Assembly (NCBI GenBank): GCA_977020255.1
Contig: CDROCS010005581.1
Coordinates: forward strand, 1-64,000
DNA length: 64,000 bases
Reading direction: 5' to 3'
From: Obrimoposthia wandeli
Taxonomy: Eukaryota
The notes beneath the pieces are model-generated. The model searched no databases. It was not told the DNA's origin and saw only the letters and a list, made by a program, of their open reading frames with translations. Of the stretch, positions 3,829 to 20,536 are shown piece by piece. The translations under genes and the position numbers were made by a program. Position 1 is the stretch's first letter. Every line of letters begins with the position of its first letter.

Positions 3829-4872
3829 CTAGGCGTTCAAAGTACGCTTCAACCGTTTCATACCATCATCAATACTTACCAGTGGTATATAACCTAAATC
3901 ACGCTTAGCGGCACTAATATCAAAGTAATGACAGGTAGATAATTGACGTGCAACAAAGCGAGTCATTATCGGCTCTTCTTTCTTATTCAATACACCATAT
4001 AGCCATTCTAATAACACACCTACCCGATACGCTAATCCCGCCGGAACACGCTTTGTCACTTTGGGTAAATCAGCACACGCTAGGATTTTATTGAGCATGG
4101 CTGCCATTGTTATCGGTTCATCATTGCTCAGAAAATATGCCTTTCCAGCACAGGTACTGCTTGGTTCTGTTAACCGTAACGCAGCTAAAATATGGGCATA
4201 GGCTGCATTATCGACATAAATGGTATCAACCAATTTATCTTCATGCCCTACAAGCTTTAAACGCCCCGCTTTTGCACGTTCAATCACTCTCGGCACAAGG
4301 TGTGGATCGTTCGGTCCCCAAATAAGATGAGGACGCAATGCGACCGTTTTTACTGACTTTCCGTTGGCTGCCAGTACCATTTGTTCGGCTATGGCTTTAG
4401 ATTCTGCATAGAAATTAAGATAACTATCGGCATACGGCGCCGATTCATCAATACCAGCTTCATCACTGCCTGCAAAGGTGACACTTGGTGTGCTGGTATA
4501 AACCAACTTATCTATACCAAGTTCTTGACATGCCTCTATAATATTACGCGCACCGTCTACATTTGGGCTGTAGTAATCGCTTTTAGATCCCCACACCCCT
4601 GCTTTTGATGCGACATGAAACACAAGATCACAACCTTGCATCGCTTGTAATAAATCAGACTTAGTACTGATATCACCTTTCACCATGGTGACACCCATTC
4701 GTTCTAAATCAGGGTAACTGCCACGGGCAAAACCCGTTACTTGAATACCAGCAATACGTAGGTATCGACAAATTGCTTTACCTAGAAAACCACCCGCCCC
4801 CGTAACAAATGCATGTTTTACATTTGAAGATAGCGAGAGTAGTGCCGTTTCTTCAGCAGGTGTAATACTCAT
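3829..4872 (-). CDS. oleD: 2-alkyl-3-oxoalkanoate reductase OleD (extended SDR)
   Basis: TGAGGFLG Rossmann motif and YAESK catalytic motif. Last gene of an oleABCD-ordered operon. Start placed at ATG 4872, which overlaps the oleC stop (ATGA). Confidence 0.9.
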
Positions 4873-6626
4873 GATACCTTCCCCTCTTTTTGCGCCCATA
4901 CAGCCAGCTTTTCTCTAAAAATCTTGGCGTTATGACGTATATCAACGGGGAAATCAGGATGAATTAGAAAATCGATAATACCCACAGTTTGCTGATGTTT
5001 AGCGCCAATCGTTTTAAGCTCGGCAAAAAATGCATTACGGGCAGTATCATCCGTCAGGGTTGTGCCTTTATTAAGCTCAACACACAGCAGTGGCACGGTT
5101 TCACCATTACGTTCAATGCCTACCAATGCGGTACGCTTGACTGAAGAGTGAGTATTAAATATACGTTCACAAGGAATAGAGAAATACGGCAGTTTGTCTG
5201 ACATAACACCCACACGATTGGCTTCAACACGGTGAGCTTTACGTCCGCACATCCATAGTTTTCCGCTTTCGTCTAAGTAACCCAAATCGCCCATGCGGTG
5301 ACGTACAGTATTCGCCCCATCGGTAATTTTAGCCTCAACGGTTGCATGATCACGGTGATAATACGCACGGCTTACCATGGGACCTTTTACAACGATTTCA
5401 CCAATTTGGTTTACAGGTAAACGTAACGTTTCGTCCCACGCAGTAATTGGATCGTCGGTGATCGCAATGATCGCAATATCCACGCCATCAACAGCTTGAC
5501 CGACACAAATACCACCACCGTTATCAGTGATATCCGTGGTTTTCATTAACTGATCACTACCAATCATAGTAAGAGGTAATGATTCTGTCGCACCATAAGA
5601 ATTCAGTACTTCCACACCGCCATTAAGCATTTGACTAAAACGTGAAATAGACGAAATAGTGGCAGGTGCGCCAGCAGAAATAACACGCTTGATGCTAGGT
5701 AATGTATGAGGTTTATGACGCTGTGTACCCGCTTGCCCTAAACGCTCTATTAACGCAGGGTTCACAAACATATTGGTACATTGGTATTGTTCAATCGCCG
5801 CAAACAAACTGTCGGGATTAGCCGTTATGGGTTTACTGGCATCCATATCAGGCACAATCGATGCCATGCCTAAAGCAGGACCAAAAAGAGAGAATAACGG
5901 GAAGGTAGCAAGATCACGCTCGCCGTGGGCGATACCATAATCATTTTTCAATACACTGATTTGTGCTTCAAACATTGCATGGGTATACACAACACCTTTC
6001 GGCGTACCCGTACTGCCACTGGTAAATAGAATGGCAGCCATTTCATCATTTTTAAGCTTGGCAATATCATAATCAATCGCTTGATGCATTTTACTGCGCG
6101 GCTTAATAACGGTATTACGTTTAAGTAATGCTTTTAGTGTTGTGCCACCAAAAATATTGGCAAATACATCATTCCCACCAACGGTGAGTAAACGTCGAAC
6201 ACTCGGTTTACCCCAACCAAATAAACAACGGGCAATATGTGCTTTAGGAATACCAATAAACGCATCGGGCTTGGCTTCATCAAAGCACTGTTTAAGGTTT
6301 TTAACCCCCATACCGGGATCAACCAAAATAGGGACAATACCCGCTTTGAATAACGCAAATGTAAGGGCAAAAAAATTAAGACTAGGCGTTACCATCAGTA
6401 CCGCTTTCATGCCTCGTTTAATACCGTGATCATTCAGCGCCTGCGCAATCGCATTACTGTCAGTGTTTAACTGTCCGAACGTTAACTCTTCATACCGTAG
6501 TTTGCCGAATAACGATCGTTTTTGAACAGCAACAGCAAGCGAAACAGGTGTTTCTTTTGCCGCTCGCGTTAAGTGGCGACAAATATTCGCTTTAGAGGCA
6601 TCAATCTCATGCCCTTTATCCATCAC
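4869..6626 (-). CDS. oleC: Olefin beta-lactone synthetase OleC (AMP-dependent ligase)
   Basis: [13 protein letters not shown] adenylation motif, SYGATE, HRMGDLG, C-terminal [13 protein letters not shown]. Start is GTG 6626 or ATG 6623. Confidence 0.92.
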
Positions 6627-10308: not shown

Positions 10309-10694
10309 CCAACCTCTTGTTCCAGAGATTGTAACGAAAAGCGTCCTCGGGTAGTCTGCTCAACCATTAACTGATTAAGCATGCTTTCATTACGGATGGT
10401 AAGTACCTCCTTATTTGATAATCGCAGCAGTAGTACAGCAGGATTATGATGGACATTACCGTTACGGATGAAAGCGCAACTATGCATCGTCGAATGTCAA
10501 AAAAATGCAGTCATAAATATGCATAATCTTTCTATCAATACATTCCGAAGCCATGAAGCTGCCAATCAATTTTTAGCGCATGTACTCACACATACGTTAT
10601 GTCATATTTTCATTTTTATTTTTCACCAGTTGCCTAATCGCAACACCCATACCGAATATATAACACCCAGCTCTTGGGTGTTGAGCGGAGACTC

Positions 10695-13600
10695 ATGATG
10701 AGCCAAACCCCGAAAACCACGTCTGAATCGCAGGAAGATACGCGACTCAATAAACGTCTTAAAGACATGCCAATTGCGATTGTTGGCATGGCGAGTATGT
10801 TTGCGAATTCCCGTTACTTGAATAAGTTCTGGGATCTTATCAGCGAGAAAATTGATGCTATTACAGAAGTGCCTGAAACTCACTGGCGCCCAGAAGATTA
10901 TTACGATGCAAACAAAAGCACACCGGATAAGTCTTACTGTAAGCGTGGTGGCTTTATTCCAGAAGTTGATTTCAACCCAATGGAATTCGGGCTTCCGCCT
11001 AACATTCTTGAACTCACTGACACGTCACAGCTACTGTCACTGATCGTAGCAAAAGAGGTATTGGCTGATGCCAAGCTTCCTGAAACGTACGACCGCGACA
11101 AAATCGGTATTACCCTTGGTGTCGGTGGTGGTCAGAAGATCAGTCAAAGCCTTAACGCTCGTCTTCAATACCCTGTTCTAAAAAAAGTATTTAAAAACAG
11201 CGGCATCACTGATGAAGACAGTGAAATGTTGATTAAGAAATTCCAAGATCAATACATTCACTGGGAAGAAAACTCATTCCCAGGTTCACTGGGTAACGTT
11301 ATTTCCGGCCGTATTGCTAATCGCTTTGACCTAGGTGGCATGAACTGTGTCGTTGATGCTGCATGTGCGGGCTCTCTTGCTGCATTACGTATGGCATTAA
11401 GCGAACTGGTTGAAGGCCGCAGTGAAATGATGATCACAGGTGGTGTGTGTACCGATAACTCACCCACTATGTACATGAGTTTCTCTAAAACACCGGCATT
11501 CACGACCAACGAAACTATTCAGCCATTCGATATTGACTCGAAAGGTATGATGATTGGTGAAGGTATCGGCATGGTTGCGCTTAAACGTCTTGAAGACGCA
11601 GAGCGTGATGGCGACCGTATCTATTCAGTGATTAAAGGGGTTGGCGCCTCTTCAGACGGTAAGTTTAAGAGTATTTATGCGCCTCGCCCTGAAGGTCAGG
11701 CTAAAGCACTTAAACGCGCTTACGACGATGCTGGTTTTGCACCGCACACACTTGGTTTACTTGAAGCCCACGGCACAGGTACAGCAGCGGGTGATGTGGC
11801 AGAATTCAGTGGCTTGAATTCGGTATTCAGTGAAGGTAATGACGAAAAGCAACACATCGCATTAGGTTCAGTGAAATCTCAGATTGGTCACACTAAATCA
11901 ACAGCAGGTACTGCGGGTCTAATCAAAGCGTCTTTAGCACTGCACCATAAAGTACTGCCGCCAACAATCAATGTAACCAGCCCTAACCCTAAACTGAATA
12001 TTGAGGACTCACCGTTCTACCTCAATACACAGACGCGTCCATGGATGCAGCGTGTTGATGGTACGCCTCGTCGTGCTGGTATCAGTTCATTTGGTTTCGG
12101 TGGTACAAACTTCCACATTGTATTGGAAGAATACACACCAGATCATGCACGCGGTGACAAATACCGTCAGCGCCAAGTCGCACAAACATTATTGTTTAGC
12201 GCAGCGTCTCGCGAAGCACTGCTTGCTAGCTTAAAAGAGACGTCAGCAAACCTTACTAACGATAGCGTGAATCTTGAAGCACTGGCTAAAAGCCATGGCT
12301 TACGCAGCATCGAAGTATCACATGCACGTTTAGGTCTCGTTGTTAAAACAAACGAAGAGCTAAGCACTCAGCTTGCTCAAGCAATTTCAAACCTAGAAAG
12401 CCAAACTAAAACGCATTGGCAGCTTCCTAGTGGTACAAGCTACCGCGAATCAGCGCTTGTAAGCGGTAATGATTCAGCAAAAGTTGCAGCATTATTTGCA
12501 GGCCAAGGTTCACAGTACCTCAACATGGGCCGTGAGCTTGCGTGTCATTATCCTGAAATGCGTCAGCAGTTAGCGAAAGCCGATCAAGTATTCGGTCAGA
12601 ATAAGAAAACAGCACTATCACAAGTTCTGTTCCCTATTCCAACGTTCAATAAAGAAAGTACACAAGCACAAGAGGCTTTACTGACTAATACCGCCAATGC
12701 ACAAAGTGCAATCGGTGTTATGTCGATGGGTCAATTTGAACTGCTAACGCAAGCAGGCTTTAAAGCCGACATGGTTGCAGGTCACAGCTTTGGTGAGCTA
12801 AGTGCCCTATGCGCTTCTGGTGTAATCTCTCAAGACGATTACTACCAGCTTGCTTTTGCACGCGGTAACGCAATGGCAGCAACACCAGCAGAAGGTGATA
12901 GCGGCACAATGTACGCTGTTATTCTTGACGCTGATAAGCTGGCAGACGTTGAAAAATGCATTAGTGCATTTGAAGGCGTAAGCATTGCTAATTACAACGC
13001 ACCAACACAACTAGTTATTGCGGGCCCTACCGACAGTGCTCAGCTTGCTGCGAAAGCACTAACCGAGCAAGGCTTCAAAACGATTCCTCTTCCTGTTTCT
13101 GGCGCTTTCCACACGCCATTAGTTGCCCACGCACAAAAGCCTTTTGCAACGGCTATTGATAAAGCAACGTTCAGCACACCAGTATTACCGCTTTATTCTA
13201 ATGCAACTGGTGAACTGCATAAGAACAATGGCAAGGTCATTAAGAAAGCGTTCAAGCAACATATGTTGCAATCTGTTCGTTTCAGCACACAGCTTGAAGC
13301 GATGTATGACGCTGGCGCACGTGTCTTTGTCGAGTTCGGACCAAAGAACATTCTACAGAAGCTCGTTGAAAAGACGTTAAGTGATAAAGCCGATGAGCTT
13401 TGCATGATCAGTATTAACCCGAACCCTAAGGGTGATAGTGATCAGCAATTACGCTTAGCCGCAGTTCAGCTCGCTGTTGTGGGTATCTCGCTAGATAATA
13501 TCGACCCGTATCAAGCAGAGATTGCGCCACCAGCAGCAACATCACCAATGAACATCAAACTAAACGCAGCGAATTACATCAGTCCAGCGACTCGTGCAAA

Positions 13601-16600
13601 AATGGCTAAGTCATTAACAACTGGCGAAGTAAGCACTAAAACTGAAATCGTTGAAAAAATCATTGAAAAAATTGTGGAAAAAGAAGTGATTAAAACGGAA
13701 ATTCGTGAAGTACCCGTTGCAGCAGCGCCAACGCAGGCTGTAACTGTACAAACAACGGCACAGCCAGTGGTTACTACAACAGCGGTAACAGCAGCGCCAG
13801 CTCAAGTTGTTACACAAGCAACGTCACAACTGCCAGTCGGTGATGCATCTTTGCATGCTTTCTTCAGTGCACAACAGCAAGCCGCTGAACTTCATCAGCA
13901 GTTCTTAGCGATTCCTCAGCAATACGGTGATACGTTCACTGCATTGATGACCGAACAAGCTAAAATGGCAACGGCTGGTATTGCGATTCCAGAAAGCCTA
14001 CAACGTTCAATGGAGCTATTCCACCAGCACCAAGCTGAAACGTTAAAAGCGCATGCCCACTACCTTGAATTACAGGCAAACAGCAATAACTCTGCGTTAG
14101 GTATGTTGACTTCACAAGCGCCTGCTCTTCAGGTTCCTGTTTATCAGACGCCAGTTCAGCAAGCACCAGCGGCTCCTGCTGCACCAGTAATTACGCCGGT
14201 AGTTACCGCACCAGTAGTTGCTGCACCAATCGCAGCACCAGTTAAGCCTGTTGTTCACACTCAACAATCAACACCAGTCGCTTCAGCGCCAATCGCGGCA
14301 CCTGTTGTACAGACAGTTAAAGCTACACCTGTTGTTCAAGCAGCTGCAGCTCCACAAGTTGCTGTCCAAACGGCAAATCCAGAACAAGTGATGCTGGAAG
14401 TGGTTGCCGATAAGACGGGTTACCCTACCGAGATGTTAGATCTTGATATGGATATGGAAGCAGACCTAGGTATCGACTCAATTAAGCGTGTTGAAATTCT
14501 AGGTACGGTTCAAGATAAAATGCCAAACCTACCAGAACTAAGCCCTGATGATTTAGCTGAGTGTCGTACACTGGGCGAAATCGTGACTTACATGAACAGT
14601 AAAATGCCAGCAGCAGCTTCTGTTGCAGCAACGGTTGCTTCAGCTCCAGTAGCGTCAGTATCAAACGGCTTAGACGCAACGCAAGTTCAAAACACAATGC
14701 TTGAAGTGGTTGCCGATAAAACCGGTTACCCAACTGAAATGCTTGACCTTGCGATGGACATGGAAGCAGATTTGGGTATCGACTCTATTAAGCGAGTTGA
14801 AATTCTAGGTACGGTTCAAGACCAGCTACCAACGCTACCTGAGTTAAACCCTGAAGATTTAGCTGAGTGTCGTACGCTAGGCGAAATCGTGAGCTACATG
14901 AACAGCAAGCTTCCTGCAGCTTCTGCTGTCGTTGCTTCTGCTCCAGTCGCATCAGTATCAAATGGCTTAGACGCAACGCAAGTTCAAAGCACAATGCTAG
15001 ACGTTGTAGCTGATAAGACTGGCTACCCAACTGAAATGCTAGACCTTGCGATGGACATGGAAGCAGATTTAGGTATCGACTCTATCAAACGTGTTGAAAT
15101 TCTAGGTACTGTGCAAGACCAACTACCGGGTTTACCAGAGCTTAACCCTGAAGATTTAGCTGAGTGTCGTACGTTAGGCGAAATCGTTGATTACATGAAC
15201 AGCAAACTACCTGCTGTCTCTGTACAAGATGTAGCGGTACAAGCACCAATAACTACGGCGTCAGCATCAAACGGTTTAGACGCATCACAAGTTCAAAGCA
15301 CAATGCTAGACGTTGTTGCAGATAAGACTGGCTACCCAACTGAAATGCTAGACCTTGCGATGGACATGGAAGCAGATTTGGGTATCGACTCTATCAAACG
15401 AGTTGAAATTCTAGGTACTGTGCAAGACCAACTACCTGGCTTACCAGAGCTTAACCCTGAAGATTTAGCTGAGTGTCGTACGCTAGGCGAAATCGTAAGC
15501 TACATGAACAGCAAGCTTCCTGCAGCTTCTGCTGTCGTTGCTTCTGCTCCAGTCGCATCAGTATCAAATGGTTTAGACGCAGCACATGTTCAAAACACGA
15601 TGATGAATGTGGTTGCCGATAAAACAGGTTACCCCGCAGAAATGCTAGACCTTGCAATGGACATGGAAGCTGACCTTGGTATCGACTCTATCAAGCGTGT
15701 TGAAATTCTAGGTACTGTGCAAGACCAACTACCGGGTTTGCCTGAGCTTAACCCTGAAGATTTAGCTGAGTGTCGTACACTGGGCGAAATCGTTGTTTAC
15801 ATGCAAAGCAAACTTTCTAATACTTCAGCAGTAGCAGCACCTTCTGCTCCTGTTTTAGAAACGATTGCAGAGACAAGTAATGTAGAGCTTCCTCCTCACA
15901 GCGAGGTGGCGCTAAAAAAGTTACCAGCGGTAGATAAATTAGTAGACTGTTTTTCCAAAGAAGCTTGTATCGTGATTACCGATGATGGTCACAATGCCGG
16001 TGTTCTAGCAGAAAAGTTAAGTGCAAACGGCCTTCAAGTTGCTGTTGTGCGTAGTCCTCTATCTGCCGCGTCACCTTTAAACAGCGAAATCGCGAGCTAC
16101 ACATTAGCAAGCATTGATGACGCTAGTATCAAAACTGTTATTTCAGACATTGAAAGCAAGCAAAAAGCAATTGGTGGATTCATTCACTTACAGCCTCTTG
16201 CAACCGATGCTAAAACAGATAAAGCAACAGCTGTAAAACTGCATGCAACGGCAAAAGAAAGCATTTCTATGGCTTTCCTATTCGCGAAATTGCTTAATAC
16301 TCAGCTAAACGCAGCAACAAATCGCAGCGTCTTCTTTACGGTAAGTCGTATCGACGGTGGTTTCGGTTATTTGGATACAGAACAGCTTATCAATGCTGAA
16401 CTAAACCAAGCGGCATTATCTGGTTTAACGAAAACATTGAGCCACGAATGGTCAACAGTCTTCTGTCGCGCACTGGATGTTGCACCAACGCTTGATGCTC
16501 GTCATCTTGCAGAAGCAGTAACAGCCGAACTGTTCGATATCGATACTCACACTGTTGAAGTAGGTCTTGCTGATGCGAATAACGGTGAATCTAGTCGAGC

Positions 16601-18395
16601 AACACTGATTGCGACTGATGCTGGTACTGCTCTAACAAAAAATGCTTCAGCCAAACTAGACAAGAACGATAACGTGCTTGTGACTGGCGGTGCTAAAGGC
16701 GTGACGTTTGAATGTGCATTAACACTGGCTAAACAGTGTAAATCACACTTCATTCTTGCAGGTCGTAGTCAACATATTACGGCAAACGAACTGCCAGAAT
16801 GGGCACAAGGTAAACAAGCGAACGAGCTAAAACCTGCTGCTATTCGCCATATTCAAACATCTGGTGATAAACCAACCCCGAAGAAAGTCGATGCGTTAAT
16901 CAAGCCTGTATTAAGCAGCCTTGAAATTAACACTGCGCTTTCTGCCTTTGCTAACGTGGGTGCGAGTGCTGAATACCTAAGCCTTGATGTATCAAACAGT
17001 GAGTCTGTTGCTAACACATTGTCTCTGTTCAATAATATTACAGGCCTTATTCACGGTGCAGGCGTACTCGCTGATAAACATATTCAAGATAAAACAATTG
17101 ATGAGTTAAACCTTGTTTATGGCACTAAAGTAGGCGGCCTTGAAGCTGTGCTTAACGCATTAAACAGCGACAAGCTAAAACTGGTTGCGATGTTCTCATC
17201 AGCAGCAGGCTTCTACGGCAACACTGGTCAAAGCGATTACGCGATGTCCAATGAAATCTTGAATAAAGCTGCATTACAGCTATCTGCACGTAACCCTGAA
17301 GCAAAAGTAATGAGCTTCAACTGGGGACCGTGGGACGGTGGCATGGTAAACGCAGCATTGAAGAAAATGTTTACTGACCGTGGTGTATACGTGATTCCTC
17401 TTCAAGCGGGTGCTGAACTGTTTAGCTCTCAGCTGCTAAGTGAAACAGGTATTCAACTGCTTGTGGGTACAAGCATGCAAGGTTCAGACAACAAGGAAGC
17501 CACTGTAAAAAAGCTTGATGCGGAGTCTATGCTAGTAGCAAAGAGTCCGCTGAATTCAAGCATTACTGTAACACGCGATCTTGACCCGAAGGCGATGCCT
17601 TTCATCAATGATCACTGCATTGCCGGTAACCCAGTGTTACCGACAGTGTGTGCCATTCAATGGATGCGTGAAGCAGCAGAGCAGCTGTTAGGGGCGAACG
17701 TTACTGTTCGCGACTACAAACTGCTTAAAGGCGTGATCTTTGATACGAATGAAGTACAAACGCTCACATTGACACTGACGCCAGACGTAACGGATCAAAT
17801 CAAAGCATTGATCAGCTGCCAAGGTCGTCCTCAGTATCAAGCGATGTTGGTGGTAGAACCCGTATCAGCTGCACAGGCTAAAACCTTTACAGCGGATTCA
17901 AATGAACCCGTAACAACAGCTGAAACCTTATACAGTAATGGCACCCTATTCCATGGCCCACGACTGCAAGGCATCACAACGGTTGAACGTTTTGATGATG
18001 CTGGTTTGCTAGCGCAGTGTCAGCTACCAACAGTGGCTGATACAGACTGCGGCGCATTTGTGCCAACCCAACACCTTGGTGGTTGTCAGCCTTTTGCTGA
18101 AGACTACTTATTACAAGCAATGTTGGTGTGGGCACGCTTGAAGCACGGTGCTGCAAGTCTACCGTCTGCCATTGGTGAATTTGTTTCTTATGAACCAATG
18201 CAAGCGGGTGATAAAGGTTGGTTAGAGCTCAACGTAATTAAAAATACGACGCGTTCACTACAAGCTAACATCTCACTTTACCATCAAGATGGTCGTTTAA
18301 GTGCTGTTATGAAAGGCGCTAAAGTCACGATCAGTAAAAGCCTTAATGAGGCATTTTTGGTGAAGTCTGAGCCAGAGAAGGAGCTTCTGTCATAG
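10695..18395 (+). CDS. pfaA: PUFA synthase subunit A: KS-MAT-ACPx5-KR-DH
   Basis: KS (DAACAGS, EAHGTGT, GHTKSTAG), AT (GHSFG, AFHT), five LGIDS ACPs, KR (TGGAKGVT), DH (DHCIAGNPVLP). Start is ATG 10695 or 10698 after GGAG. Confidence 0.97.
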   Translation: MMSQTPKTTSESQEDTRLNKRLKDMPIAIVGMASMFANSRYLNKFWDLISEKIDAITEVPETHWRPEDYYDANKSTPDKSYCKRGGFIPEVDFNPMEFGLPPNILELTDTSQLLSLIVAKEVLADAKLPETYDRDKIGITLGVGGGQKISQSLNARLQYPVLKKVFKNSGITDEDSEMLIKKFQDQYIHWEENSFPGSLGNVISGRIANRFDLGGMNCVVDAACAGSLAALRMALSELVEGRSEMMITGGVCTDNSPTMYMSFSKTPAFTTNETIQPFDIDSKGMMIGEGIGMVALKRLEDAERDGDRIYSVIKGVGASSDGKFKSIYAPRPEGQAKALKRAYDDAGFAPHTLGLLEAHGTGTAAGDVAEFSGLNSVFSEGNDEKQHIALGSVKSQIGHTKSTAGTAGLIKASLALHHKVLPPTINVTSPNPKLNIEDSPFYLNTQTRPWMQRVDGTPRRAGISSFGFGGTNFHIVLEEYTPDHARGDKYRQRQVAQTLLFSAASREALLASLKETSANLTNDSVNLEALAKSHGLRSIEVSHARLGLVVKTNEELSTQLAQAISNLESQTKTHWQLPSGTSYRESALVSGNDSAKVAALFAGQGSQYLNMGRELACHYPEMRQQLAKADQVFGQNKKTALSQVLFPIPTFNKESTQAQEALLTNTANAQSAIGVMSMGQFELLTQAGFKADMVAGHSFGELSALCASGVISQDDYYQLAFARGNAMAATPAEGDSGTMYAVILDADKLADVEKCISAFEGVSIANYNAPTQLVIAGPTDSAQLAAKALTEQGFKTIPLPVSGAFHTPLVAHAQKPFATAIDKATFSTPVLPLYSNATGELHKNNGKVIKKAFKQHMLQSVRFSTQLEAMYDAGARVFVEFGPKNILQKLVEKTLSDKADELCMISINPNPKGDSDQQLRLAAVQLAVVGISLDNIDPYQAEIAPPAATSPMNIKLNAANYISPATRAKMAKSLTTGEVSTKTEIVEKIIEKIVEKEVIKTEIREVPVAAAPTQAVTVQTTAQPVVTTTAVTAAPAQVVTQATSQLPVGDASLHAFFSAQQQAAELHQQFLAIPQQYGDTFTALMTEQAKMATAGIAIPESLQRSMELFHQHQAETLKAHAHYLELQANSNNSALGMLTSQAPALQVPVYQTPVQQAPAAPAAPVITPVVTAPVVAAPIAAPVKPVVHTQQSTPVASAPIAAPVVQTVKATPVVQAAAAPQVAVQTANPEQVMLEVVADKTGYPTEMLDLDMDMEADLGIDSIKRVEILGTVQDKMPNLPELSPDDLAECRTLGEIVTYMNSKMPAAASVAATVASAPVASVSNGLDATQVQNTMLEVVADKTGYPTEMLDLAMDMEADLGIDSIKRVEILGTVQDQLPTLPELNPEDLAECRTLGEIVSYMNSKLPAASAVVASAPVASVSNGLDATQVQSTMLDVVADKTGYPTEMLDLAMDMEADLGIDSIKRVEILGTVQDQLPGLPELNPEDLAECRTLGEIVDYMNSKLPAVSVQDVAVQAPITTASASNGLDASQVQSTMLDVVADKTGYPTEMLDLAMDMEADLGIDSIKRVEILGTVQDQLPGLPELNPEDLAECRTLGEIVSYMNSKLPAASAVVASAPVASVSNGLDAAHVQNTMMNVVADKTGYPAEMLDLAMDMEADLGIDSIKRVEILGTVQDQLPGLPELNPEDLAECRTLGEIVVYMQSKLSNTSAVAAPSAPVLETIAETSNVELPPHSEVALKKLPAVDKLVDCFSKEACIVITDDGHNAGVLAEKLSANGLQVAVVRSPLSAASPLNSEIASYTLASIDDASIKTVISDIESKQKAIGGFIHLQPLATDAKTDKATAVKLHATAKESISMAFLFAKLLNTQLNAATNRSVFFTVSRIDGGFGYLDTEQLINAELNQAALSGLTKTLSHEWSTVFCRALDVAPTLDARHLAEAVTAELFDIDTHTVEVGLADANNGESSRATLIATDAGTALTKNASAKLDKNDNVLVTGGAKGVTFECALTLAKQCKSHFILAGRSQHITANELPEWAQGKQANELKPAAIRHIQTSGDKPTPKKVDALIKPVLSSLEINTALSAFANVGASAEYLSLDVSNSESVANTLSLFNNITGLIHGAGVLADKHIQDKTIDELNLVYGTKVGGLEAVLNALNSDKLKLVAMFSSAAGFYGNTGQSDYAMSNEILNKAALQLSARNPEAKVMSFNWGPWDGGMVNAALKKMFTDRGVYVIPLQAGAELFSSQLLSETGIQLLVGTSMQGSDNKEATVKKLDAESMLVAKSPLNSSITVTRDLDPKAMPFINDHCIAGNPVLPTVCAIQWMREAAEQLLGANVTVRDYKLLKGVIFDTNEVQTLTLTLTPDVTDQIKALISCQGRPQYQAMLVVEPVSAAQAKTFTADSNEPVTTAETLYSNGTLFHGPRLQGITTVERFDDAGLLAQCQLPTVADTDCGAFVPTQHLGGCQPFAEDYLLQAMLVWARLKHGAASLPSAIGEFVSYEPMQAGDKGWLELNVIKNTTRSLQANISLYHQDGRLSAVMKGAKVTISKSLNEAFLVKSEPEKELLS
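14382..15812 (+). repeat. Five tandem ACP-coding repeats in pfaA
   Basis: Unit spacings 306, 297, 309 and 297 nt, measured at the GAAATCGT of each unit; near-identical DNA. Confidence 0.95.
15903..15937 (+). other. Candidate -1 ribosomal frameshift signal 1 in pfaA (ACP|KR boundary)
   Basis: SD-like GAGGTG (15903-08), in-frame A_AAA_AAG (15914-20), -1 frame stop TAA at 15935-37. Confidence 0.5.
17493..17550 (+). other. Candidate -1 ribosomal frameshift signal 2 in pfaA (KR|DH boundary)
   Basis: SD-like AAGGAAG (17493-99), in-frame A_AAA_AAG (17507-13), -1 stop TGA at 17516-18, hairpin 17520-17550 starting 6 nt after the heptamer. Confidence 0.65.
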
Positions 18396-20536
18396 TGGCT
18401 GATTCTTCTAATAAAGCGATGCCATTGCGCATCGCTCTTTTAGCCCAAGCAGCAGATGCTGCTGGGCTTTCTGCCGATATTTTAGCGTCATTACCTGCAG
18501 TCCAACATATTGCTGTTAATGATGATTTCAATGCCGCGCTTCACACTGCTATTCAAGCGGTAAACCAAGGTCAGTTGGTTCAACTTACCCTCCAATGTAA
18601 GCCGAACGAACCACAACAGCGTTTACTGATGCTTAGCGGTTTAGCTGCTGCTAAAAACAAAATTCACCCCCACGCGTACCTTGCAGGCTTTGCTGAAGGC
18701 GCAGTTAATAGCATAGAAATAGCCCTCACCCAGTCTCGTCGCCAAAAGGTCGATCTCAGTCATCAACAAACATCTGAAACATTAGCTGCAGACCAGCAGT
18801 TTATCGCTTTCTTTAACATGGTTGATGATATTGCTAGTCGTACACTGCACACTGCAGCTCATGCTGTAAACAAGACGGCAGACAATAAAAACCATTACTG
18901 GTTTACTGAACCCCATAAAGCACGCGTGGCAAGTTTAACGTTTAATGCTAATTCTGATAATGCCAACACTGATTCAGAAAGTAGTTTGGTATTAACACAA
19001 GCAACAGGGTTACAAAAAGCGCAATCATTACTGAACACCTCTCGCTTATTCTTCGTCCTCTCAGGGCTGAATGAAACGGCATTATCAGTGCAATTAGAAC
19101 AGCTCAAGCAACGTTTAGCTGATTTCCCTAATGATTTAGCGCCAAATGATTTAACACCAAATGACAAGGCAACCCTAATTGCTTTAATGGCTAAGAACTT
19201 AACGCAGTTTCAAACTGACGTTTCGTCTTCTGCCACTTCATCGATGTCACTACCGACTATCGTATTGCAAGGTGCTTCTATTACTGCTGTTTTGCAGGAA
19301 ATATCTGCAATCAGTAATGCTTTACCAAAAGTAATGGCAGAGAAAAATCATTACAAAACACCAGCTGGTAGTTGTTTCTCACCGGCACCCAATAGCAAAG
19401 GTGGCGTCACTTTTGTGTATCCAGGCGTTGGTACGGTATACCCTGGCATGTTCCGCGAATTTCATCAGTATTTCCCCGCACTTTTCGCACAACTAGAGCG
19501 CGAAGGAAACCTGAAAGAAATGCTGCAAGCCGACAAAACATACGGTGAAAACTCAGCAGAAATGACACTCGGTGAGCTAGCCATTGCCGGTGTTGGTAGC
19601 AGCTACTTGTTAACGCAATTACTCTGCGAAGAGTTTGCCGTTAAGCCTGATTTCGCTTTAGGTTACTCTAAAGGTGAAGCATCGATGTGGGCGAGTTTAG
19701 GTGTATGGAAAAACCCACACGCGCTGATCGAACTGACTAAGACGAGCCCAATATTCACCACAGCTATTTCTGGTAAGCTAACAGCGGTACGTGAAGCATG
19801 GCATTTAACTGATGCAGAAGAAATTACGTGGAATAGCTTTGTTGTTCGCTGTGATTCGGCTTCCATTGAAGCATTACTGCCTGAGTTCCCGCGTGCTTAC
19901 CTTGCCATTATTCAAGGTGACACCTGTGTATTAGCAGGTTGTGAAGCTACGTGTCGCGCTTTACTCAAAAAGCTTGGTAAACGTGGCATTGCAGCGAATC
20001 GTGTAACCGCCATGCACACCACACCAGCATTAAGTCAGCACTCACAAGTCACCGCGTTTTATACTCAGCCATTATGTGATGAGCTACCGACTGATATTAA
20101 ATTCATCAGCGCGGCAGGGTTATTACCTCAAAATCAAAACGTGCCAGTGAGTATCGACAGCCGAAGCATTGCCAATTCTATTGCCGATACCTTTTGCACT
20201 ACGCTCGATTTTACCGCTTTGATTCGCACCGCTCGCGAACAAGGCGCACGTTTATTTGTTGAAATCGGTGCCGACAGACAAACCAGTACGCTTATCGATA
20301 AAATAAACCGCACAGATAACGTAACAACTGAGAGTTGTACTGTCGCTGCAAATGCAAAAGGCGGCGAAGACATTGTTACTTTGCTTAAATGCATTGCTCA
20401 GTTAATTACGCACCAAATACCGCTGTCACTTTCTCCCCTGCTTCAAGGGTTAGAAGAACAAGTGAATACACTGAAATTACAGAGTGTATCGTCAGCGAAT
20501 ACCATACCGAACACCACACAAGGAGAGCCAGTGTGA
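18395..20536 (+). CDS. pfaB: PUFA synthase subunit B (acyltransferase)
   Basis: YPGVG and GYSKG AT motifs, FVEIG. The GTG start overlaps the pfaA TAG. Confidence 0.93.
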   Translation: MADSSNKAMPLRIALLAQAADAAGLSADILASLPAVQHIAVNDDFNAALHTAIQAVNQGQLVQLTLQCKPNEPQQRLLMLSGLAAAKNKIHPHAYLAGFAEGAVNSIEIALTQSRRQKVDLSHQQTSETLAADQQFIAFFNMVDDIASRTLHTAAHAVNKTADNKNHYWFTEPHKARVASLTFNANSDNANTDSESSLVLTQATGLQKAQSLLNTSRLFFVLSGLNETALSVQLEQLKQRLADFPNDLAPNDLTPNDKATLIALMAKNLTQFQTDVSSSATSSMSLPTIVLQGASITAVLQEISAISNALPKVMAEKNHYKTPAGSCFSPAPNSKGGVTFVYPGVGTVYPGMFREFHQYFPALFAQLEREGNLKEMLQADKTYGENSAEMTLGELAIAGVGSSYLLTQLLCEEFAVKPDFALGYSKGEASMWASLGVWKNPHALIELTKTSPIFTTAISGKLTAVREAWHLTDAEEITWNSFVVRCDSASIEALLPEFPRAYLAIIQGDTCVLAGCEATCRALLKKLGKRGIAANRVTAMHTTPALSQHSQVTAFYTQPLCDELPTDIKFISAAGLLPQNQNVPVSIDSRSIANSIADTFCTTLDFTALIRTAREQGARLFVEIGADRQTSTLIDKINRTDNVTTESCTVAANAKGGEDIVTLLKCIAQLITHQIPLSLSPLLQGLEEQVNTLKLQSVSSANTIPNTTQGEPV

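Follow-up and report, generated by a model that had tools for sequence, protein, structure and literature searches.

The window analysed here is the whole stretch of 64,000 nucleotides from contig CDROCS010005581.1 of assembly GCA_977020255.1, which is filed under Obrimoposthia wandeli. Its forward strand carries pfaA, the gene of the largest subunit of the bacterial polyunsaturated fatty acid (PUFA) synthase, and the linker between the KR and dehydratase (DH) domains of PfaA holds a candidate cassette for −1 ribosomal frameshifting (Table 1). The pfaA open reading frame (ORF) has a 2573-codon translation, in which the ATG at 10698 (MSQTPK...) is the likely start of a protein of 2565 amino acids and 273.8 kDa. 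The Pfam domains follow one another in the order KS, AT, five PP-binding repeats, KR and a DH of the polyketide synthase (PKS) type. The KR-DH part shares 95-96% identity with proteins of Photobacterium indicum, P. frigidiphilum and P. profundum, which are named by their sources type I polyketide synthase or PfaA, and 78-81% identity with the PfaA proteins of Vibrio. Three more large ORFs lie 3′ of pfaA on the same strand. Because of the domain order, the protein identity and these three downstream ORFs, the locus is the pfaA-D operon of a Photobacterium. Its first gene has the KS-AT-(ACP)n-KR-DH order of a PfaA subunit and is followed by pfaB, pfaC and pfaD.

Table 1. Positions of pfaA, its last two domains and the elements of its two cassettes in the window
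Feature	Position	Strand	Basis
pfaA ORF (KS-AT-ACPx5-KR-DH)	10674..18395	+	ORF list, translation, Pfam domains
Second cassette, ACP-KR boundary	15903..15937	+	Sequence, orthologue alignment
KR domain	16674..17336	+	Pfam PF08659, ORF residues 2001-2221
Shine-Dalgarno-like AAGGAAG, upstream stimulator	17493..17499	+	Sequence
Slippery heptamer A_AAA_AAG (GT-A AAA AAG; Val-Lys-Lys)	17507..17513	+	Sequence, pfaA frame
−1 stop TGA, one codon past the shift; product end Val-Lys-Lys-Ala	17516..17518	+	Sequence
Hairpin, 6 nt past the heptamer	17520..17550	+	Fold
PKS-type dehydratase (PKS_DH_N, residue 2294 to C-terminus)	17553..18392	+	Pfam PF21089; HxxxGxxxxP motif

Across the KR-DH site, the codons of the pfaA frame read AAC AAG GAA GCC ACT GTA AAA AAG CTT GAT GCG. 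The codons GTA, AAA and AAG begin at 17505, 17508 and 17511, which sets the heptamer in the X_XXY_YYZ phase, and the −1 reading is AAA AAA GCT TGA. A first-pass annotation of the sequence had proposed that a Shine-Dalgarno (SD)-like run, an in-frame heptamer, an immediate −1 stop and a hairpin 6 nt downstream are combined at this point, and all four are present at the positions listed in Table 1. The 12 base pairs of the hairpin form three helical parts (GCGGA/UCCGC, UCU/AGA and UGCU/AGCA); a loop of 3 nt and two 1x1 mismatches are unpaired, and the base is GC-rich (GCGG/CCGC). The fold of 17514-17560 has an energy of −18.9 kcal/mol compared with −8.5 ± 2.2 kcal/mol for shuffled sequences (z = −4.79), and none of the 200 shuffles was as good.

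The site lies in a linker that is variable and indel-rich in the protein alignment. An AlphaFold2 model of the KR-DH part places it, at low confidence, in a 32-residue coil from the last KR strand to the first DH strand, with the latter beginning 17 residues past the Lys-Lys. Since the mean predicted local distance difference test score of this model is 54.7 and only 14 close sequences were available, it was read for the coil and strand pattern around the site only, without a fold search. The HxxxGxxxxP motif of the DH (DHCIAGNPVLP), expected about 30 codons on in the first-pass annotation, starts 33 codons past the Lys-Lys.

Some other explanations of the site were examined and rejected. Neither a promoter-like nor a terminator-like signal was found at the site, and a promoter or terminator explanation was dropped. 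An internal start behind the SD-like element was rejected as well, since the ATG/GTG at 17532 is not conserved (TCG and other codons in Shewanella) and lies 30 nt from the SD-like run. The out-of-frame ATG at 17518 was also discarded as a start, as it opens merely a 5-codon ORF.

Conservation of the KR-DH element

Orthologues were sampled as one genome per GTDB species, and the best 80 of 493 relatives, from other marine species, together with the window gave 81 sequences from Photobacterium, Vibrio, Aliivibrio and Shewanella, with 57-95% identity in the KR-DH region. Codons were threaded onto the protein alignment over the last 2.7 kb of pfaA. The heptamer A_AAA_AAG stands in frame at the KR-DH site in all 81 sequences, and the A run is exactly six in every one. 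The codon before the heptamer ends in A throughout (Val GTA in 72, Leu CTA in 4, Ile ATA in 3, Leu TTA in 1 and Ala GCA in 1). The wobble A is upheld across five codons and four amino acids, in genes in which GTA makes up 24% of the Val codons and ATA 8% of the Ile codons. The −1 stop follows exactly one codon past the shift in 81 of 81 sequences, as TAA in 60 and as TGA in 21. Past the heptamer, the codons of the zero frame differ between sequences (CTT, CCT or CGT, then GAT, AAT, GAA or AAA), and so do the encoded residues (L, P or R, then D, N, E or K). The offset of the −1 stop is unchanged through nine such codon pairs. Conservation in orthologues, which the first-pass annotation had put forward as a check, holds for the heptamer, the −1 stop and the covarying stem described below in all 81 sequences.

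Comparisons at synonymous sites showed the same pattern. The fourfold-site identity of shared residues has a median of 0.37 across all pairs, indicating that the synonymous sites are near saturation and that the time for change was ample. Synonymous diversity, taken as observed over that expected from codon usage in nine-codon segments (n = 889) of the 3′ 2.7 kb of pfaA, reaches its global minimum of 0.021 in the segment starting at 17505, compared with a median of 0.85. The trough covers ~17484-17547. The second-deepest trough (0.27) is found at 15909, at the other A_AAA_AAG of the gene. The first-pass annotation had named a lack of conservation at synonymous positions as the outcome that would speak against its proposal; the opposite was seen, with the strongest synonymous constraint of the 3′ 2.7 kb at this site. 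A degenerate amino acid is invariant among the 81 sequences in 255 columns, and the codon is invariant also in only five of these, namely AAA/AAG at 15915/15918, AAA/AAG at 17508/17511 and, as the codon that opens the stem, GCG at 17520.

These numbers bear on the explanation that the motif arises by chance, by codon-pair bias or from a need for Lys-Lys in the protein, without recoding. The bare AAAAAAG is indeed common in the window (35 copies on both strands versus 24.8 expected), so that a single sequence could not exclude chance, and the Lys-Lys is conserved in the protein. The orthologue comparison does exclude it. A control Lys-Lys in the KR domain of the same gene (ALKKMF, 17361) uses all four codon pairs among the 81 sequences (AAG-AAG in 29, AAG-AAA in 24, AAA-AAG in 12 and AAA-AAA in 5), with all four bases occurring at the third position of the preceding codon. 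In addition, all five codon-invariant columns lie in the two cassettes, and the stem covaries. Chance, codon bias and protein-level need are thus excluded by internal controls. Within the window PfaA, the eight Lys-Lys pairs comprise five AAG-AAA, one AAA-AAA (11181) and two A_AAA_AAG (15914 and 17507), exactly as counted in the first-pass annotation. The AAA-AAA pair belongs to an in-frame A_AAA_AAA (CTA AAA AAA) in the KS domain, at 11180-11186. This pair shows no nucleotide conservation in six full-length homologues (CTT CGT AAA, CTT AAG AAA and CTG AAA AAA occur in its place), and the KS-domain run is probably without consequence.

In every distinct orthologue, the minimum free energy structure has a hairpin 5-7 nt (nearly always 6 nt) past the heptamer, with energies of −15.6 to −26.2 kcal/mol. 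The letters of the stem vary by clade, for example GCGGAGUCU/AGAGUCCGC, GCGGGUG/CGCCCGC and GCGGAUG/CAUCCGC, with GCGGACUCU/GAGGGUUCGC and GCGGAUCUAAC/GUUAGAUCCGC as further clade-specific stems, and the amino acids encoded by the stem vary between clades as well. The statistics on the structure were calculated from 69 distinct sequences in 76 almost gap-free columns. RNAalifold applied to the full 76-column alignment retained five basal pairs only, because the inner stem differs between clades. A structure of 13 pairs was therefore named by hand and tested against slid and shuffled controls. In this structure 86.4% of the cells are paired, compared with 34-53% in controls with the pairing partner displaced by 1-3 columns. 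Changes on both sides were found in 9 of the 13 stem pairs. The double-change cells number 107 versus 44.8 ± 4.9 in shuffles, and the covariation score is 0.33 versus 0.145; neither value was reached by any of 500 shuffles.

Upstream of the heptamer, an AGG core at a distance of ~10 nt is present in at least 90% of the 69 distinct sequences, and the residues encoded there vary widely. The G at alignment column 14, within the SD-like element, is likewise at least 90% conserved. Pairing energies with the 3′ tail of 16S rRNA, for which the anti-SD sequence was taken from general knowledge, dip at a fixed upstream distance, with a mean best value of −5.0 kcal/mol compared with −2.2 kcal/mol at random places in the same genes. 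Pairing of −5 kcal/mol or better was found in 65% of the sequences versus 11% in the null.

A conserved hairpin and SD-like element might also serve the mRNA without productive frameshifting, as a translational pause for KR folding or as a signal for mRNA stability or processing. Both elements are conserved and covary, and either could slow ribosomes at a domain boundary. However, conservation is strictest in the heptamer, in the wobble A and in the −1 stop (T[GA]A), none of which a pause or a stability signal would need, and a slippery run would be harmful at such a place. An explanation of this kind is considered quite improbable. The observed pattern shows strong purifying selection on exactly the elements of the cassette, across four genera and beyond.

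The more distant pfaA homologues were represented at 50% clustering, and the DNA was compared for nine of them, with identities taken from phmmer over the KR-DH region. Lys-Lys occurs in the same linker in many proteins, down to ~35-46% identity. The in-frame A_AAA_AAG was found in the KR-DH linker of six loci, L081 (52%), L082 (44%), L083 (41%), L084 (44%), L087 (46%) and L088 (45%), which span 41-52% identity by phmmer and 39-50% by BLASTP. The codons before the heptamer in these six are TCA, GTA, GTA, GCA, GGA and GGA, the −1 stops follow 1-9 codons on, and SD-like runs and hairpins are present in most. A covariance model built from the 69 sequences matches cassettes outside its training set in L081 (31.7 bits), L082, L083 and L088. 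Its match at 2952-3022 of L085 was rejected as a chance match, having no heptamer. The KR-DH linker of L089 (37%) carries a nine-A run (CAA AAA AAA AGT, 2055-2066), which recalls the transcriptional-slippage dnaX of Thermus.

Slippage of RNA polymerase on the A run would produce mRNAs with one base more or less, and the truncated protein would then arise by ordinary translation. Thermus dnaX does so on A9 (PMC5009743), and the remote homologue L089 has A9 at the same linker. However, the run of exactly six A in all 81 orthologues is below the runs of 9 described for bacteria (PMC5009743), and no homopolymer of ~9 or more A/T is present at the site. The site has features of ribosomal stimulation, namely the X_XXY_YYZ phase, a hairpin after a 6-nt spacer and an SD-like element. 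The KR-DH site is transcribed, as seen in assembled metatranscriptome contigs of related strains, and these contigs show no indel there, although rare variants would not be visible in contigs. Polymerase slippage is thus regarded as a very improbable source of the short protein.

Comparison with dnaX and other recoding systems

The first-pass annotation had likened the element to the cassette that yields the short DnaX product, and the layout in pfaA indeed has the geometry of E. coli dnaX. The E. coli sequence reads AGGGAG-N10-A_AAA_AAG, with a stop one codon on and a stem 6 nt on. The two cassettes share the heptamer, a −1 stop that allows one extra residue, a 6-nt spacer to a GC-based stem and an SD-like stimulator ~10 nt before the heptamer. 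Their stems have similar stabilities (−18.9 kcal/mol in pfaA and −19.7 kcal/mol in dnaX, both over 47 nt), and the short product, which is predicted for pfaA, equals the long one minus C-terminal domains in both genes. Unlike dnaX, pfaA is an unrelated gene for a 274-kDa megasynthase of the PKS or fatty-acid synthase (FAS) type and has two cassettes. A single tRNA-Lys(UUU) for AAA and AAG, the basis of the shiftiness of A_AAA_AAG, is expected in Vibrionaceae and Shewanella. In E. coli, A_AAA_AAG is especially shift-prone, and ~50% of the ribosomes on dnaX shift and terminate one codon later (PMC5009743), whereas the shift on pfaA is predicted from the sequence.

A search of 17440-17620 with the 4227 families of Rfam gave a single match, to RF00382, the DnaX ribosomal frameshifting element, which covers 17490-17555 at the full model length (E = 0.033). 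In the reverse direction, the covariance model of the pfaA site matches the E. coli dnaX cassette at 14.7 bits (E = 0.031). When Rfam was run on seven whole orthologue loci, a larger search space, the DnaX model was not found at E ≤ 10. A match to Corona_FSE at the L073 site lies on the wrong strand and was discarded as a chance match to a perfect hairpin.

Among other bacterial chromosomal genes, copA yields a truncated isoform with the N-terminal domain of CopA(Z) by −1 frameshifting. Similarly, in csoS2A/B, where a 5′ SD stimulator is missing, a −1 shift inside the uninterrupted ORF yields a protein limited to the N-terminal domain(s) of the full-length one (PMC5009743). Both differ from pfaA in their slippery sites and stimulators, and neither is a multi-domain synthase or a tandem two-site gene. 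The survey of Sharma et al. (2014; NAR 42:7210; PMC4066793) covered 36 genomes of Enterobacteriaceae, from which pfaA is missing, and found reduced synonymous variability in 2 of 56 non-mobile clusters. Every feature on which that survey relied is found in pfaA. More than 90% of the orthologues have a conserved X_XXZ_ZZN motif, synonymous variability is reduced, an SD lies 6-17 nt upstream, the hairpin is conserved, and the predicted product is shorter than that of the zero frame. No other place within the aligned part of pfaA gives a synonymous signal as strong as this site.

Several points weigh against a functional cassette. The match to RF00382 scores 18.8 bits, under the gathering threshold of 35; the element would work like DnaX yet is not a member of that RNA family. 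The SD-like element is weaker than in dnaX (AAGGAAG versus AGGGAG); about one third of the sequences pair more weakly than −5 kcal/mol, and in a minority of Shewanella the element is weak or absent. The heptamer is missing at the KR-DH linker of two remote homologues, L085 (43%), which has one near the ACP-KR boundary, and L086 (40%), so that the cassette is not universal to the enzyme family. No tRNA gene, for Lys or otherwise, is found in the 64-kb window. Finally, after decades of pfa work, including expression in E. coli, no PfaA doublet was found in the PUFA-synthase literature examined, in studies that ran no full-length PfaA gels. Weighed against the conservation and covariation described above, these points leave it very likely that a dnaX-type cassette for programmed −1 ribosomal frameshifting is functional in the KR-DH linker of PfaA.

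Predicted protein forms and their possible roles

With such a cassette, two stimulators would keep a ribosome with tRNA-Lys on AAA-AAG in place, namely the hairpin, 6 nt downstream, and the AGG-containing element, ~10 nt upstream, to which the tail of the 16S rRNA pairs. Some of the ribosomes would then move back by one base on A_AAA_AAG, translate a single Ala codon and terminate. Both the full-length KS-AT-ACP5-KR-DH protein of 2565 amino acids and a form ending in Lys-Lys-Ala would thereby come from each pfaA mRNA. Calculated from the start at 10698, the predicted product of a shift at 17507 has 2273 amino acids and 242.1 kDa, ends in VKKA and comprises KS-AT-ACP5-KR without the whole DH. 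The slippage itself, a function of the short form in its own right and the origin of a DH-less PfaA (~242 kDa versus 274 kDa) from the same pfaA mRNA are inferred.

The other A_AAA_AAG of the gene, at the ACP-KR boundary, belongs to a second cassette, with GAGGTGG at 15903-15909, the in-frame heptamer at 15914-15920 and a −1 stop TAA at 15935-15937, five codons on. The heptamer is invariant in 81 of 81 sequences, and across all of them its wobble A and the upstream element (GAGG or CAGGAAG) show little or no variation. In 31 Shewanella sequences the −1 stop comes after one codon and a hairpin (GCGGCG/CGCCGC) lies 6 nt past the heptamer. For the remaining 50 sequences, including the window, the stop is five codons off and no significant hairpin is predicted (z ~0). 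Conservation of the 15914 site is thus supported, with stimulators that are incomplete in the clade of the window. The first-pass annotation had placed the SD-like runs of the two sites at equal distances from the heptamers, which is true if the GAGG core is set at 15903-15906 and fails otherwise. The covariance model of the KR-DH site matches the ACP-KR sites of Shewanella at 20-27 bits. In a subgroup of Shewanella (for example L035:2004-2074 and L035:3588-3660), both cassettes are near-identical, with CTA or GTA followed by AAA AAG CTT AAT GCGG. In the metagenomic PfaA L085, a GT-A AAA AAG lies near the ACP-KR boundary (4830-4890). AAGGAG precedes it by 10 nt, its −1 stop comes two codons past the heptamer, and a hairpin follows immediately.

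A shift at 15914 would add a KS-AT-ACP5 form with a predicted length of 1746 amino acids, a mass of 186.5 kDa (~187 kDa) and the C-terminus KKVTSGR, again from the start at 10698. Since the ACP-KR heptamer is as well conserved as that of the KR-DH site, a ladder of three predicted products from the two heptamers (KS-AT-ACP5, the same with KR, and that with DH), as drawn in the first-pass annotation, is plausible.

A real shift could, alternatively, be selected for quantity. Termination at 17518 would then cut the amount of full-length PfaA, maybe with polarity on the DH part and on pfaBCD once translation and transcription are no longer coupled, and the short protein would be a by-product. The cassette precedes pfaB, pfaC and pfaD on one strand, in agreement with such a control. 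In distant homologues the −1 stop can lie 3-9 codons off instead of 1, indicating that the exact C-terminus of the short product is of little import. Furthermore, EPA (eicosapentaenoic acid) in P. profundum SS9 shifts with cold and pressure at constant pfa transcription. However, both heptamers fall precisely in inter-domain linkers, whereas a pure attenuator could sit anywhere in 7.7 kb. Placement in linkers is expected if each short protein has to fold as a set of complete domains, and it argues for functional isoforms, short of proof. Selection for quantity alone is accordingly judged unlikely, and functional isoforms made by the frameshift are preferred.

With pfa transcription unchanged, P. 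profundum SS9 contains more EPA in the cold and under high pressure, for a reason that the authors call unclear (bioRxiv 10.1101/2020.01.28.924217), and the pfaA cassettes bear on this question. On a more tentative and rather doubtful extension, PfaA would be the first megasynthase with a domain composition set at the ribosome; its two cassettes would produce a three-step ladder, and a hold by hairpin and SD-like element that depends on temperature and pressure would set the ratio of the forms, supplying the missing post-transcriptional control of EPA and polyolefin output in cold-living deep-sea bacteria, in which pfa transcription stays constant.

The pfaA frameshift has apparently not been reported before. 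Searches of the full-text literature for frameshifting together with pfaA, PUFA synthase, polyketide synthase, Shewanella or EPA returned nothing relevant, with subscription papers covered incompletely. Polyketide and fatty-acid synthases are not mentioned in a 2016 recoding review or in a 2025 frameshifting preprint, nor is a pfaA frameshift in the 2014 survey of Enterobacteriaceae (PMC4066793). The PUFA-synthase papers that were text-searched do not mention a truncated PfaA.

PUFA synthases are intensively studied for omega-3 production and for the way in which iterative megasynthases select the dehydratase, of the PKS type in PfaA or of the FabA type in PfaC. If made from the same mRNA, a PfaA without DH would alter models of subunit stoichiometry and product control, and codon optimisation of pfaA for heterologous production would silently delete the signal. 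The gene would also join a very small number of chromosomal, non-mobile genes of bacteria that have a cassette of dnaX grade. The cassette is conserved across several genera and would be the first of its kind in an enzyme of the PKS or FAS type.

At the 3′ end of the gene, the pfaA stop shares one base with the first possible start (GTG) of the pfaB ORF at 18395-20536 (window positions 18393-18397). This one-base overlap suggests translational coupling of pfaA and pfaB, which termination at 17518 would bypass. The window as a whole is plainly a segment of a Photobacterium chromosome, and the assembly seems to be a mix of a eukaryote and a bacterium.

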